A stretch of DNA of 64,000 nucleotides from Paramoeba atlantica (taxonomy: Eukaryota > Protista > Discosea), in NCBI GenBank assembly GCA_977017575.1, contig CDRNVI010000025.1:62001-126000 (forward strand). Direction: 5' to 3'. Below the pieces are notes generated by a model that had not been told where the DNA came from, ran no database searches, and saw nothing but the letters and a program-made list of their open reading frames with translations. The position numbers and the translations under genes are program-made. Position 1 is the first letter of the stretch. Each line of letters opens with the position of its first letter. Below are positions 3,246 through 63,790 of the stretch, piece after piece.

Positions 3246-3888
3246 TTGCGGTGGTTGTATAACTACCGCTCTACCCTCGATTATTGCAAAAAGTGAATAA
3301 AAACAGTGAAAATATAAATATAACAGTAATATAATAGAAGAAAAAAATATAAAAAGGGGCTCCGGTGGTCCAAAATTGAAAAAAAAATTAAAAAAAATGG
3401 GAGGTCCATGGGGGGGAGGTGTCCAGAGGGGGTCCAGGGGGGGGCACACCCCACGAATTTTTTTTGAAAAAAATATTTTTCGAAACAAACCAGAAGGGGT
3501 AGCCGAGGTCTTGGTGCGCATTTTCCACCCCCCCCTACCCCGGGGTGATCCCTCTGCGTATCCGCAGGACGGTTCCGACAAGTTCGGAGTTTTTTTAAAT
3601 ATTCAAATTGGCGAAAAAAATCGTAATATTTTTGTTCTCCAAAATCGTGTCCCCTATTGTATTTAGAGAGTTTGAGACTTATACTAGCTTTCTGCGCCGT
3701 CGCTTTCGCAAGATACACTTGCGACCACTTCTTTCGTACCACTTCTTGAAGCCGAATCTTGGCCGAATTTTCTTTTTTATACTCTTCGTTAAATGCGGTG
3801 GTAGTTTTCAACGCGAAGCGCGCACGAGTGACTTCTAAGTTGAAAACAACCACCGTGTTTAACGAAGAGCCTAATATTTTTTTATAGA
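3246..3888. mobile_element. Non-autonomous DNA element with hairpin head, palindromic tail and 11-bp flanking direct repeat
   Basis: GAGAGAGATAA at 3235-3245 and 3889-3899. Head GCGGTGGTTGTATAACTACCGC; tail palindrome ~3775-3875. Internal part homologous to ~63440-63790; head and tail recur at 13097-13170, ~33295-33330 and 60368-60600. Confidence 0.6.
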
Positions 3889-12750: not shown

Positions 12751-13096
12751 CACTAAAGTGGATTTGGCTCGGGACGGTGGTCGGACGATATCATATCTCG
12801 AAGAACAGTTTACGACATCCGTGCGACTGGGATTTACCCGGACAGTGGTTTAGTTAAAACACGTCACTTGAAAGAAAAGTTGAATAACAGCTGAAAGAAT
12901 ATCAACTGAAGGAATAAACCCGCTTAGGCACATACTAATAATCCTTATGATGGTAATGGTCGTTCCCACACGAAAATATCGGATTTAGCGCTCTCAGAAC
13001 AAAAATACTCAAAAACGCCCCCATTTTTACCTAAAAATCGGCGATTTTTGGTTCAAATCCTTCCGGTTTTTTCGGCCTCCTTTTTTTCCTTTTTTC

Positions 13097-13170
13097 GCGA
13101 AGCTCGCAACATGAGGGACTTCTAACTTGAAAACAACCACCGCGTTTAACGAAGAGCCTAAAAAAGAAAA
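13097..13170. repeat. Tail fragment of the 3246-3888 element family
   Basis: GCGAAGC...GACTTCTAACTTGAAAACAACCACCGCGTTTAACGAAGAGCCTAA matches 3813-3875. Confidence 0.7.
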
Positions 13171-14118
13171 ATATTAAGAATGAACTAGATAAAACTACTA
13201 TAAATCGGGGAAAAAAGTGTTTCTGTGTAAGTCTGTGTGAATTCGTGTACATCCGTGTAGGTTCGTGTAGGTTTTTTTGAACCCCAACCTAGCCCATCTG
13301 CAGACTCTCCATTGTAATCGATCTAATACCCCAAAAAACAAAGTTGACTTCGGGTTCAGCATTGGAAGACACATATGCATGCTTTCGAAAGCTTTCGTTA
13401 GGAGAAGATGGGGAATGATACAGTGCCTGTCTCCGGCAGACGTGGAACATAGGATCTCAGTGTTTCTCACAGTTTACCTTCAGAATGCCGTTCGGAAACT
13501 CGTTCTGCTTTTTTCGGGGATGAAACGGCGATGTTGGTAAACGGTGAGGTACAAGGATATACGCTAGAGCAGATCGGATACCCGCAACCGAAGGTGGTCG
13601 ACACAAATCCCAAGGAAACTGTTACCGTCTTCCTGGCTGGAATATATGACTTTGCCCTAGATAAAGTTTACCCTCTTTACCCAACTGATATATTCAACCA
13701 CAGCGCCAAGAATCGTGAGAGTTCTAGCATTTATGCTGAAATGACGCGCCAGGCTTCCGCTCTTACTGGAATATACGCGGATGTTAGTCAATCTGGTTGG
13801 GTAAAGGGAGATAACCCCCCTCTCATTAATAATTATAAACCTCCAAAAATCATTAACATGTTGGTTTATAGGAAATTAATTAGACTATAATTCTGAGTCT
13901 CACTTTAATAATTATAAACCCCAAATTCTTCATTTTTTATCTAGAAAGTCATCTGTACCACATGCTTTGCACTAAAAACTGCTTCCAAGTTGAGTAAAGT
14001 GTCTTGAAAATCAAGAATTTGAAGCCCATAATAAGAAAAATTCACTTAATAAGTGAATTTTTATTGATGAATTTTTATTTCCATTGATGATTTCTATTGA
14101 TGAATTTTCATTTTAATA

Positions 14119-26575: not shown

Positions 26576-26858
26576 TATCAAAATTTCCAAAAATGCTGAA
26601 AACTTAGATTTGCTAATTTTTTGTAAAAGACATGTAAAATATTTAACCAGCCGTACAAATGTAAATTGCATTGTTTACTTTCTGTCATTTTTAACATTTT
26701 GATTCCTCTTTCTCATTTGGCATTCAATGCCAACTATGTTCGCCAACGATTCTTACCACAGGAACACGTCGTCGTGATTCCGTCAGCTGAAGAAGTCAGT
26801 GCATCCTTGGTTCAGGTTGATACACTACAGCGAGAGAAAGAGGCTGTAAACGAGAAGT

Positions 26859-27105
26859 GTTGTATGTAATACTTCGCACACTGTAACCTTTAAGAGCTTC
26901 AACGATCATGTCAGCCACATGTTCTGACTTTTTGCTGTCAAGTTTATGCAGTTCGGAATGTACTTTTCCGCTCGATGAGGCATAGAAGATATCCGCTGTG
27001 TTTGGCGCCTTCGATAAGATCAGCTTCCCGATCTCCATATCGCTCTCTGTTGTTTATTACCTCAGGGAGTTCGGAAATATCGACACGATTGGGAATACGA
27101 AATTC
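26859..27105 (-). pseudogene. IS30-family transposase remnant (core around first Asp)
   Basis: IPNRVDISELPEVINNRERYGDREADLIEG...LIERKS, a frameshift, then SKKSEHV...VRSITYN. Confidence 0.85.
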
Positions 27106-60367: not shown

Positions 60368-60600
60368 AATAATTATTCATGATATTTTGGCAATTTTTCT
60401 TTTTTAGTCGCTTCGTTAAACACGGAGGTAGTTTTCAACGCGAAGCGCGCAGCATGAGTGACTTCTAAGTTGAAAACAACCACCGCGTTTAACGAAGCGA
60501 CTAAAAAAGAAAAATTGCCAAAATATCATGAATAATTATTGCGGTTGTTGTATAACCACCGCTCTACCCTCGATTATTGAAAAAAAAGTGGACAAAGACA
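60368..60600. repeat. ~170-bp palindrome joined directly to the head of the 3246-3888 family
   Basis: Arms ATAATTATTCATGATATTTTGGC... / ...GCCAAAATATCATGAATAATTAT, then GCGGTTGTTGTATAACCACCGCTCTACCCTCGATTATTG. Confidence 0.8.
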
Positions 60601-60780
60601 ATGAAAATCTAAAGAACAAAGTAATAAACCCCTCCCCCCCAATGAAAAGTGACCGACCCCCTTTTTTTTCGTAGTGTTCGTTTGAGCTGATTTTTGTTGC
60701 ATTTTGCAGATCTCAACACAAAGACTTTGCGCGAGAAGGAATGAAACTAAAAGAAGCGATAAGTTTAATTTAGAGAGAGA

Positions 60781-61200
60781 TTACCATTTTTTCATTTTTT
60801 CGCCGTTCAATTTTATACACTGTTTAAGGCGAGAGTCAAAGCTTAAGACCGTTTTGTCGATCACTTTTTGAGGCAAAGAAGACCATGCTTCACGTACACA
60901 TCGGATAAGTGAAGGTTTGTCCGATGGAGTTTGTTCGTCCACTGCCTCTTGAACCATAGACCAGACGTTTTCTATGGGGGAAAGGTCTGGTGAATTGGGG
61001 GGCCAATTTTTCAATACATCTTTCATTCTACTTGTAATGTAGTCCTTAGAGGCATGGGCGGTGTGTGCCGTGGCCCCATCTTGTTGAAAAATACAATTCA
61101 TGGGGAATGTTACCTTTTTGAGCGTCTCTATGTAGGAAATACTCGTGATAGACGAGTCAGAATCCAGAATAACCAAGTGTCTCCACCCTACTCCTATGGC
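60781..61200 (-). pseudogene. Tc1/mariner-type transposase, C-terminal half
   Basis: AIGVGWRHLV, IFQQDGATAH and WPPNSPDLSPIENVW; 35 residues between D2 and E. Confidence 0.85.
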
Positions 61201-61321
61201 AACACTGTTTTTTCGGTCGGACAGCACCACAAACGGACGCGGGATTGTATGAACCATGTTAAGAAAGAAACAATGGATTAAGAAAAAAAAATTATATAAG
61301 GAGAAGAAAAAAGGAGTACCT

Positions 61322-63078
61322 GGATAATCGATATTGACGGAACAACATAACGCGTTTCTTTAGTAAAGAGATAAACTTTTTACCTTTACTGCTTTACAAC
61401 TTACGGCTATACAACTTACTGCTTTCATGTATAGTACCGTCTCTTTATAGTAAAATTTGGCCTTCCAAGCTCTTTGGGGAGAACCATTTCAAGCACTTTC
61501 GTGGCCGTTTGTTCAGTTTGTTGGCCGTCTTACTAACTTCGCGCTGTGTCAACTCCTCAAAAGTATCTGACTTGGTGTGATACTGACGGACCAGACCATT
61601 CATGTTTTCAACGGCCCCCTTTTCCCATGAATGGTAAGGATGACAAAAGTAAGATTTGCATCCTAACTTCTTGTTGATGGCTTCATGATTGGTGTTTTCA
61701 GTTCCATTGTCATACGTTATGGTATGCACTTTGTATTTCTTTAAGGCTTTCAGCACCTGTGTTTCAACTTCTTTTGACTGCATGTAAATTCAAAATCAAT
61801 ATTGAAATCAAAATGATGCGCTGGACAATTCTTATCGTAAACTCTTAATCTTTATTTCCAACTTTCGGTAGCTACTGCAACACGTATGAACTACGGTTAA
61901 ATTTTTTTTTTTTTAGAGAAATAATATTTGATATAATCCGATCAAACTAGAAAATTCAACAATAACTAGATATATCACGCAGAACGAGTAGACGTTTTAT
62001 TGAATAGCACATTTTGAATATCAATTTTCAACCTAGAATAACAATCCTTCTAGGAAAAACGAGCAAACAAGTAAGCAAAGTAAGATGAATCATTGATGTT
62101 TTCAGGTTTCGAATAGACCAGCATATTTTTCTAGGGTAAGCAGCATAAGCTTCTAAGATATAGCGATGCTCAACAGCAACAGCCTCTCGTGAAACATCAA
62201 CATCATACCAAGAATGATTGAGAAATTTATTTTTGGAGTTCTTTTACTGCTTCATACCACCTACCCAATTCGCATCCGGAATGTAGTCTCGAAGCTGGGA
62301 CACCACCGTATACGCTGAAAACTTCTCAATCTCAAGCTGAAAGGCATCACGTTGACTGCTTGGATTGAAATACACGAAGGACAACAAACCTACTCTTTCG
62401 TTCACAAAGGGTCAGGATGAAATACCCACTTTTCTTTGCTCCCTCAATTAAATCGGCCTCCCAATCACCATACCGACGTCGTGTGTTTACTATTTGGGGA
62501 CGATGATCGATAGAAACCCGGTTTGGAATGGTACTTCGACCATGAATGCGTCGAACATAAGGCCGCCTTCCGCGGATCCGTAGGCACTTATGAATCTTCC
62601 CTCCATTATCTCGACGAACAAATCGATAGATCGTGGAAGTGGATGGTGAACCTTGTGAGCCGACAACAAGTGTATTAGCAACCTGCTCCGGGCTGTGAAG
62701 CTTTCGGAGACGGGTCTTTACACTTTTTTCAAGACTGGATCGAATTAGACGTGGTCTGGTTCCTTTATTAACCAGTCGTCTCTTGGCAACACGATGGGCA
62801 CGGCTGGAACGGTATTGCCCACCTCTTTTCCTGTTGCGTGCCAGCTCACGACATACCGTACTTGGGGACTTATCAATTGATCGGGAAATTTCCCTCTTCG
62901 TGGCGCCACTTTCAAACATCGTTTGAATATCTTTGCGATTGTTTTCAGATAATCTTCTGTACTTTGGCATGAATGAACTGAATTATGTAGAAATTAGTAT
63001 ATGAAGTGTATTATGTAGAAATTAACCTTTTGTTGCGCTGAGTATGACAAATTGTTGCACTGACATTGACAATCCACA
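61322..63078 (-). mobile_element. IS30-family insertion sequence with split 315-aa transposase
   Basis: HTH N-terminus (SPSTVCRELARN), WEADLIEG, ITYDNG, EKGAVEN and RPRKCL motifs. 26-bp IS30-like terminal repeat at 63053-63078; the other end (~61322-61347) is only a weak candidate. Confidence 0.9.
61782..62351. mobile_element. 570-bp unclassified insertion flanked by an 8-bp direct repeat
   Basis: TTGACTGC at 61774-61781 and 62352-62359; removing it restores the IS30 reading frame. Confidence 0.75.
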
Positions 63079-63215
63079 ACATCTTGGCGCCCAGCGTACT
63101 TTATGACGCGGGGCTGCTTTTTGACCGGGTGCTACCCACACATTCGCGGGATAGCTTCCTTTTTGACACACCCTGACCGTCCCTCATCCTTAACAAAAGC
63201 TTTCCGCTATTCGTA
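63079..63215 (-). pseudogene. Probable upstream piece of the same Tc1-like transposase
   Basis: AFVKDE, a frameshift, then NVWVAPGQKAAPRHKVRWAPRC, the segment expected just before (VWG)AIGVGW. Confidence 0.5.
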
Positions 63216-63275
63216 AGCCCCTCTTTCGGTAGCCGAAAAGGAGACTTCGGCATTTTTCCGAAAAAATGAAGTTTT

Positions 63276-63790
63276 TCAAAAAAAGAAATCAGTTTTTTTA
63301 AAGATTTTTAAAAGAGCTAAAAATAGCGGGAACGTGCAGATCTCAAAATTTTGAACGATAATGTGGTGCCGTAACCCCCCTACGCCCCCCTGTGCGAAAA
63401 ATAAGGGTGGGTCACTTATTCGTTGGGGGGGGGGGGTTATGATAGAAGAAAAAAAAATAAAAAGGATGCTCCGGTGGCCCAAAACAGAAAAAGAATTAAA
63501 AAAATGGGGGGTCCATGGGGGGTCCAGGGGAGGGTTCCAGGGGGGGGCATGGTCGAGCAAATTTTTTTGAAAAAAATATTTTTCGAAATAAATCCGCAGA
63601 AGGGGTAGCCGGGGTCTTAGCGAGCATTTTCCACCCCCCTACCCGGGGGTGACCCCCCCGCGTATATGCAGGATGGGTCCGCCTAGTTCGGATTTTTTGG
63701 AAAAAAAAATATTTTAAAAAAATTCAACTTGGCGAAAAAAAATGGCAAAAAAAATATTTTTCCAAAATCGATTCCCATAATGTGTTTGTA
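63276..63790. repeat. Dispersed repeat homologous to the interior of 3246-3888
   Basis: ~63440-63790 aligns with ~3360-3660, and ~63320-63385 with 14365-14430 (inverted). Pieces also at ~52100-52190 and ~56490-56580. Confidence 0.75.

Follow-up and report, generated by a model that had tools for sequence, protein, structure and literature searches.

Does the DNA examined here, a 64,000-nt stretch from Paramoeba atlantica that we call the window, hold a transposon of the bacterial IS30 family living in a eukaryotic genome? The original prediction, drawn up from the sequence alone, held that it does, and our analysis agrees: the element is integrated and multi-copy, falls into at least four lineages, and has relatives outside the host that are at most 48% identical. 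We put the probability at about 85% that window positions 63078–61199 (minus strand) are an inactive copy of a true DNA transposon of the IS30 family that resides in the nuclear genome of this protist. Read from its left end to its right, the locus is made up of the following features:

63079–63437, minus strand: 5' part of a Tc1/mariner-like host element (33-bp terminal repeat from 63437)
63053–63078, minus strand: left terminal inverted repeat, 26 bp (TGTGGATTGTCAATGTCAGTGCAACA), identified against sister copies and E. coli IS30
63030–63050, minus strand: subterminal direct copy of the repeat core (TTGTCATACTCAGCGCAACA), from repeat family D10 and alignment
62352–62970, minus strand: transposase gene, part 1 (residues 1–206 and the first base of codon 207; HTH_38, first catalytic D)
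61774–62351, no strand assigned: nested insertion, consisting of a 570-bp unclassified insert (61782–62351) and the second copy of an 8-bp target duplication
61445–61773, minus strand: transposase gene, part 2 (remainder of codon 207 to residue 315 and stop; second D, E)
61199–61444, minus strand: 3' non-coding part of the element, shortened, from homology to sister copy L001
60627–61198, minus strand: 3' part of the Tc1/mariner-like host element (DDE_3 remnant; terminal repeat to near 60627)

The transposase is read from two minus-strand ORFs, at 62970–62350 (207 aa) and 61783–61448 (112 aa). Joining 62970–62352 to 61773–61445, as first proposed, indeed gave 948 nt encoding 315 aa without stops, with an intact catalytic triad of D173 (in WEADL), D228 (TYDNG) and E262 (AVEN). 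The N-terminal ORF carries HTH_38 (Pfam, E 7.9e-13), and the two gene halves scored 119.5 and 117.2 bits against the NCBIfam model transpos_IS30 (NF033563), for which the curated cut-off is 80. Because the halves abut in this profile (positions 1–171 and 170–267, respectively), they represent one complete transposase with nothing missing at the break. BLASTP aligned the joined protein with E. coli InsI across the whole core (32% identity, E 2e-41), and the triad spacing was D-54-D-33-E, compared with D-55-D-33-E in InsI of E. coli IS30. Other models fell below their cut-offs, namely IS481 (22.9 and 31.6 bits; cut-off 224) and IS630 (17.9 bits; cut-off 100). We assign the element to the IS30 family because its transposase, its end repeats and the 3-bp target duplications of its sister copies all agreed with that family in the features tested. 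The frame of the window copy is open, with a 6-nt in-frame deletion relative to sister copies. An acceptor-like CAG had been noted just 5' of the ATG; it is present here, but three sister copies have GAG, and the AG kept as CAG or GAG among the closest copies is a candidate acceptor only. The single RNA-like public run contributed no contigs here.

Searching proteins with the N-terminal piece as query, we recovered close relatives (91%–95% identical) from ENA assembly ERZ24900291 alone, and all remaining matches were at most 48% identical. In this host, the IS30-like family encodes one transposase of 315–328 aa. At least four lineages (A–D), 40%–64% identical in protein, are present in one assembly. 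Lineage A contains the window copy, L001, L004, L092 and L093; lineage B (L003 and L005) is 64% identical to the N-terminal piece of the window copy, lineage C (L002) 54%, and lineage D (L095 and P0044) ∼40%. L002 is 1425 bp long and has an intact 315-aa ORF, both ends and a CCT duplication, and a second intact 315-aa lineage-C copy (P0113) is 98.4% identical to it; on sequence, lineage C looks potentially active. The triad residues are separated by 53 and 33 residues in lineages C and D. The lineage-D copy L095 has host repeats in common with other loci.

The window also contains two further IS30-like remnants. One, at 26858–27103 (minus strand), is 88.7% identical to lineage D (L095 6456–6703), and the other, at 37513–37780 (plus strand), matches lineage A in its C-terminal part at ∼76% identity. 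Directly 5' of the lineage-D transposase ORF we observed about eight tandem units of 21–22 bp (GCACCCTTATCTGTCATAAAT; L095 5815–5985). The end of this lineage appears to be built of multiplied motif copies, with a TGTCAT core in common with the lineage-A repeat.

Outside the host, the closest species-representative bacterial genomes reached 42%–43% identity, metagenomic relatives at 45%–48% sat in compact bacterial gene neighborhoods or operon contexts, and the nearest protein clusters were all bacterial. An NCBI match at 47% (P0060), considered as a second eukaryotic host, was ruled out by its bacterial context. The best full-length match in IMG/VR was only 40%–41%, from which transfer by a viral vector gains no support.

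With E. coli InsI as the root, a maximum-likelihood tree built from 58 sequences recovered lineages A, B and C as a clade with 100/100 support, and a quick tree of 170 rows agreed with it. The A–B–C clade, lineage D and a group of 26 bacterial sequences formed a further clade (96/93), itself nested in wider bacterial IS30 diversity; the named members of the 26-sequence group are all Verrucomicrobiota. The DDE phylogeny proposed as a check at the outset thus places the host copies among bacterial IS30s, nearest to a Verrucomicrobiota-rich group. The simplest reading would be an old transfer from bacterium to protist followed by diversification in the host, as far as we can infer the direction and the number of entries. 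The host lineages could instead stem from at least two separate bacterial transfers. Lineage D is only ∼40% identical to the other lineages, and the free tree leaves it in a polytomy with the A–B–C clade and the Verrucomicrobiota-rich clade, as such a history would allow. Against this, holding the four host lineages in a single clade costs just 1.5 log-likelihood units and is not rejected by the AU test (p-AU 0.41), and the D-53/54-D-33-E spacing is common to all four, as are ends built of repeats that have a TGTCAT core. We consider separate transfers possible but the less likely history, and a single old transfer remains our preferred one.

We then asked what splits the gene of the window copy. 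The interruption is bordered by an 8-bp target duplication (GCAGTCAA; 62359–62352 and 61781–61774, minus strand). L001, L004 and L092 match its flanks at 95%–98% identity, lack the interruption and keep a single GCAGTCAA. It is therefore a later insertion and not an intron. The joint 61773>62352, with 8 shared letters, also appears in contigs from three public runs of this organism; these runs may be the source data of the assembly, so the empty forms read from them here and below speak for internal consistency and are not independent confirmation. A spliceosomal or non-conventional intron, with the window copy still coding for a working transposase, is highly unlikely. Removal of the gap does restore a perfect 315-aa frame, but in none of the nine registers in which the repeat would permit excision are the ends GT-AG, GC-AG or AT-AC, use of the one GT...AG pair in the vicinity would shift the reading frame and run into a stop, and the window copy lacks its right end and so would be unable to transpose itself regardless. 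With the gap absent from sisters, flanked by an 8-bp duplication and offering no splice register that restores the frame, we rejected the intron and treat the interruption as an insertion.

The 570-bp insert has no terminal inverted repeats and no Rfam match, and its ORF fragments have no Pfam match; a second copy was not found in ∼130 kb of host loci. An A13 run lies in its interior, and on the minus strand two short fragments of ORF share one frame that starts at its 5' edge. To judge from contig depth, the insert is likely repeated in the genome; it may be a retroelement truncated at the 5' end or filler DNA that was captured.

Uninterrupted copies with both inverted repeats and 2- to 3-bp target duplications, which had been named as something to look for, were found. 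L001 (1442 bp) and L092 (1447 bp) are full-length copies with inverted ends, 97.4%–97.6% identical to the window copy; L004 is a copy with an internal deletion, and L093 is a 5' fragment. With termini defined as N-G-[T/C]-GGATT...AATCC-[A/G]-C-N, the left and right flanks read ACT/ACT in L001, TCA/TCA in L092, CCT/CCT in L002 and CCA/CCT in L004. Three copies (L001, L092 and L002) thus carry 3-bp duplications, a length that fits the 2–3 bp of the IS30 family. The ACT duplication of L001 was confirmed by the periodicity of the surrounding host satellite. That of the window copy is unreadable owing to the deletion of its right end.

All lineage-A copies that we examined are dead. The window copy is split by the insertion and has no right end, the L001 transposase gene carries a TAG and two deletions that break the frame, L092 shares that TAG and is also frameshifted, and L004 combines a frameshift with an 18-bp duplication and a deletion. 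Synonymous to nonsynonymous differences between copies were 9:13, 8:14 and 7:14 (by codon position; small counts), a spread that gives no clear sign of selection on the transposase. The CAG>TAG stop common to L001 (5809–5811) and L092 occurs despite different loci and target duplications, which suggests either trans mobilization of a defective copy or an origin of the stop in a master copy. Joined-end intermediates (circles or dimers) are the transposition route of the IS30 family; we saw no IRR–IRL joined-end junction in nine host loci, which cover little sequence.

The ends of the element resemble those of bacterial IS30. The IS30 repeat quoted in the original prediction is the exact IRL of E. 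coli K-12 IS30A, and the 26-bp upstream end, likened to it there, matches at 17 of 26 positions for IRL and 19 of 26 for IRR (counted by eye on an alignment with the E. coli K-12 IS30A sequence). Conserved between the two are the tip, TGT.GATT, and the inner GTCA..GCAACA. The left repeat is the same in L001, L004, L092 and L093 except for the outermost base (T in the window, G in those copies), and it is found inverted at the right end of L001 and L092. Both terminal repeats are present in L001, L092, L004 and L002; the right repeat of the window copy is deleted. Complete copies have three copies of a 20-bp core (TTGTCATACTCAGTGCAACA) per end. The left end of the window copy has two, and the third, located between them in the sisters, is missing through a 33-bp deletion. 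The longer left-end form exists elsewhere in the genome, where run contigs show 63050>63029 with TTATTATTAA.

The right end had been placed near 61322 (61322–61345), and the net length estimated at ∼1.18 kb. Neither value holds: homology to the sisters runs ∼120 bp further, to 61199, and complete lineage-A copies measure 1442–1447 bp. Of what had been observed at the outset, then, the ORF join, the triad and the left end stand, and the right end and net length do not. Homology to L001 stops at window position 61199 (L001 6196), and the L001 element continues to 6301, leaving the window copy without its last ∼105 bp, which include the right terminal repeat and two more core copies. The letters between run-contig joints indicate that ∼11 nt of the Tc1-like target went along with the IS30 right end. 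The break falls in a shared TGC (61201–61199), which suggests a microhomology-mediated deletion of the right end.

The element is integrated in eukaryote-type DNA. It lies in a Tc1/mariner-like element with a DDE_3 remnant (Pfam E 1.9e-09), which in turn interrupts a further repeat whose uninterrupted form is found at window positions 3594–3242. The nesting is four levels deep: the insert lies in the IS30-like element, the IS30-like element in the Tc1/mariner-like element, and the latter in the outer repeat. Run contigs contain Tc1-like copies without the IS30 element (joints 61201>63079, 61201>63081 and 61201>63084, with 11–16 letters between) and the outer repeat without the Tc1-like element (joint 60586>63438). 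At the window junctions themselves, 61199 and 63079, none of the short run contigs listed spans either one. The eukaryotic nature of the host is judged here from eukaryote-type neighbors; contigs of other copies carry RVT_1, zf-RVT and DDE_3 genes, a tyrosine-recombinase retroelement and a eukaryote-type WD40/TPR gene.

It is extremely unlikely that a co-cultured or symbiotic bacterium was the source of the IS30 sequences and that assembly wrongly joined them to protist DNA: IS30 is otherwise known from prokaryotes only, every nearest protein cluster is bacterial and the assembly may have been made from these same public runs, but the near-identity to an insertion sequence of a co-cultured bacterium that the original prediction had named as fatal to it was not found (best relative 48%), at least eight separate loci in one assembly have copies flanked by host repeats, satellites and retroelements, copies are pseudogenized differently from one another, clean 3-bp target duplications lie within host sequence, and run contigs hold empty-site forms of the Tc1-like target. 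Identity, nesting, target duplications and decay largely refute contamination, which we rejected in favor of residence in the protist genome.

The host DNA around these copies has features of its own. The Tc1/mariner-like element is ∼940 bp long and internally deleted, with a TA-type target and 33-bp inverted ends that start with a C-run (ACCCCCCCCCCCCAACGAATAAGTGACC). The L001 copy is located in a satellite of ∼60-bp units (…CACTGCAGTCACTGCCTCACGTGG…; L001 4578–4860 and 6302–6760), which a prokaryotic gene caller reads as long ORFs. A ∼170-bp palindromic repeat, present at 60368–60541, 3767–3874 and 13096–13172 of the window, L001 2309–2453, L005 9431–9562 and L095 273–394, occurs in very many copies (summed contig depth above 100,000 in two runs). 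It matched Rfam MIR4208 on both strands at 60.8 and 59.8 bits, below the gathering score of 140. Rather than a microRNA, it is probably a MITE-like repeat that folds into a hairpin.

How does the element compare with known systems? Like bacterial IS30, it has one transposase with HTH_38 and an rve-type core (D-D(33)-E), 26-bp terminal inverted repeats, short target duplications (3 bp here) and a total length of 1.4 kb. It differs in its host, which is a eukaryotic nuclear genome and not a prokaryote, and in its layout, with the ORF taking up about two-thirds of the element, compared with 94% (1152 of 1221 bp) in IS30A. Each end has two or three direct core copies, or about eight tandem units in lineage D. 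The family has also diversified deeply inside one nuclear genome, with copies nested in eukaryotic transposons and satellites. Multi-site ends are known in some eukaryotic transposons, Mu and Tn7, and the multiplied subterminal repeats observed here recall them.

As with IS481EU and IS3EU, a prokaryotic IS family has become established in eukaryotes and forms its own clade among bacterial relatives. IS481EU has target duplications of ∼4, 15 or 25 bp, and IS3EU, with TA..TA termini, has duplications of 6 bp (PMC10045372). The element described here has 3-bp duplications, termini TGTGGATT and an IS481 score far below the cut-off, and model scores, duplication length and termini rule out identity with either group. 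Tc1/mariner identity was likewise discarded, as the DDE_3 match and the TA target belong to the surrounding element and the IS630 score is below its cut-off.

Movement of insertion sequences from prokaryotes to eukaryotes, with some intact copies, has been described for IS607-like and IS5-like elements (PMC3673617). What we report differs from those transfers in the family concerned, IS30, and in its amplification into at least four deep lineages in one host. When 430 eukaryote genomes were screened for every major IS group, IS607 was the only one recovered (Gilbert and Cordaux 2013; PMC3673617), IS30 is absent from the list of IS-related eukaryotic superfamilies of Kojima and Bao (2023; PMC10045372), and papers from 2026 still name IS481EU as the latest addition. 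We found no report of a eukaryotic IS30 lineage in the searchable literature (as distinct from Repbase, Dfam and ISfinder), which within that scope bears out the earlier statement that no such group is established.

The best-fitting history of the locus begins with insertion of the IS30-like element into a Tc1/mariner-like element already within another repeat. By analogy with bacterial IS30, the transposase would bind the 26-bp terminal repeats and the 20-bp subterminal copies, and insertion would produce a 3-bp target duplication. The right ∼105 bp and ∼11 nt of target would then have been lost at the 3-nt microhomology, and the gene would later have been split by the unrelated 570-bp insertion, in the order that we infer for these two disabling events. 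The locus is a fossil, but its four-level nesting, with empty sites, clearly documents the residence of an IS30-type element in a eukaryotic genome. Intact sister copies elsewhere may be active today, to judge from their reading frames and ends.

Going further, we lean slightly toward regarding these elements as an unreported eukaryotic superfamily derived from IS30, which would have entered once, long ago, from a Verrucomicrobiota-like donor and given rise to at least four lineages with repeat-built ends. It would still move today, given that there are intact copies that have both ends and target duplications. So far, just a few prokaryotic IS families have a known eukaryotic counterpart, and every further case shows that a transposase from bacteria is able to function in chromatin and that eukaryotic cells can express it. 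As a bacterial model, IS30 has been studied well, and a eukaryotic branch with intact copies would offer a system for studying the changes needed for nuclear survival, of which longer non-coding ends and multiplied putative binding-site repeats are visible here. It would also add a datable bacterium-to-protist transfer, and it gives genome annotators a new class of repeat that may otherwise be overlooked or flagged as contamination.
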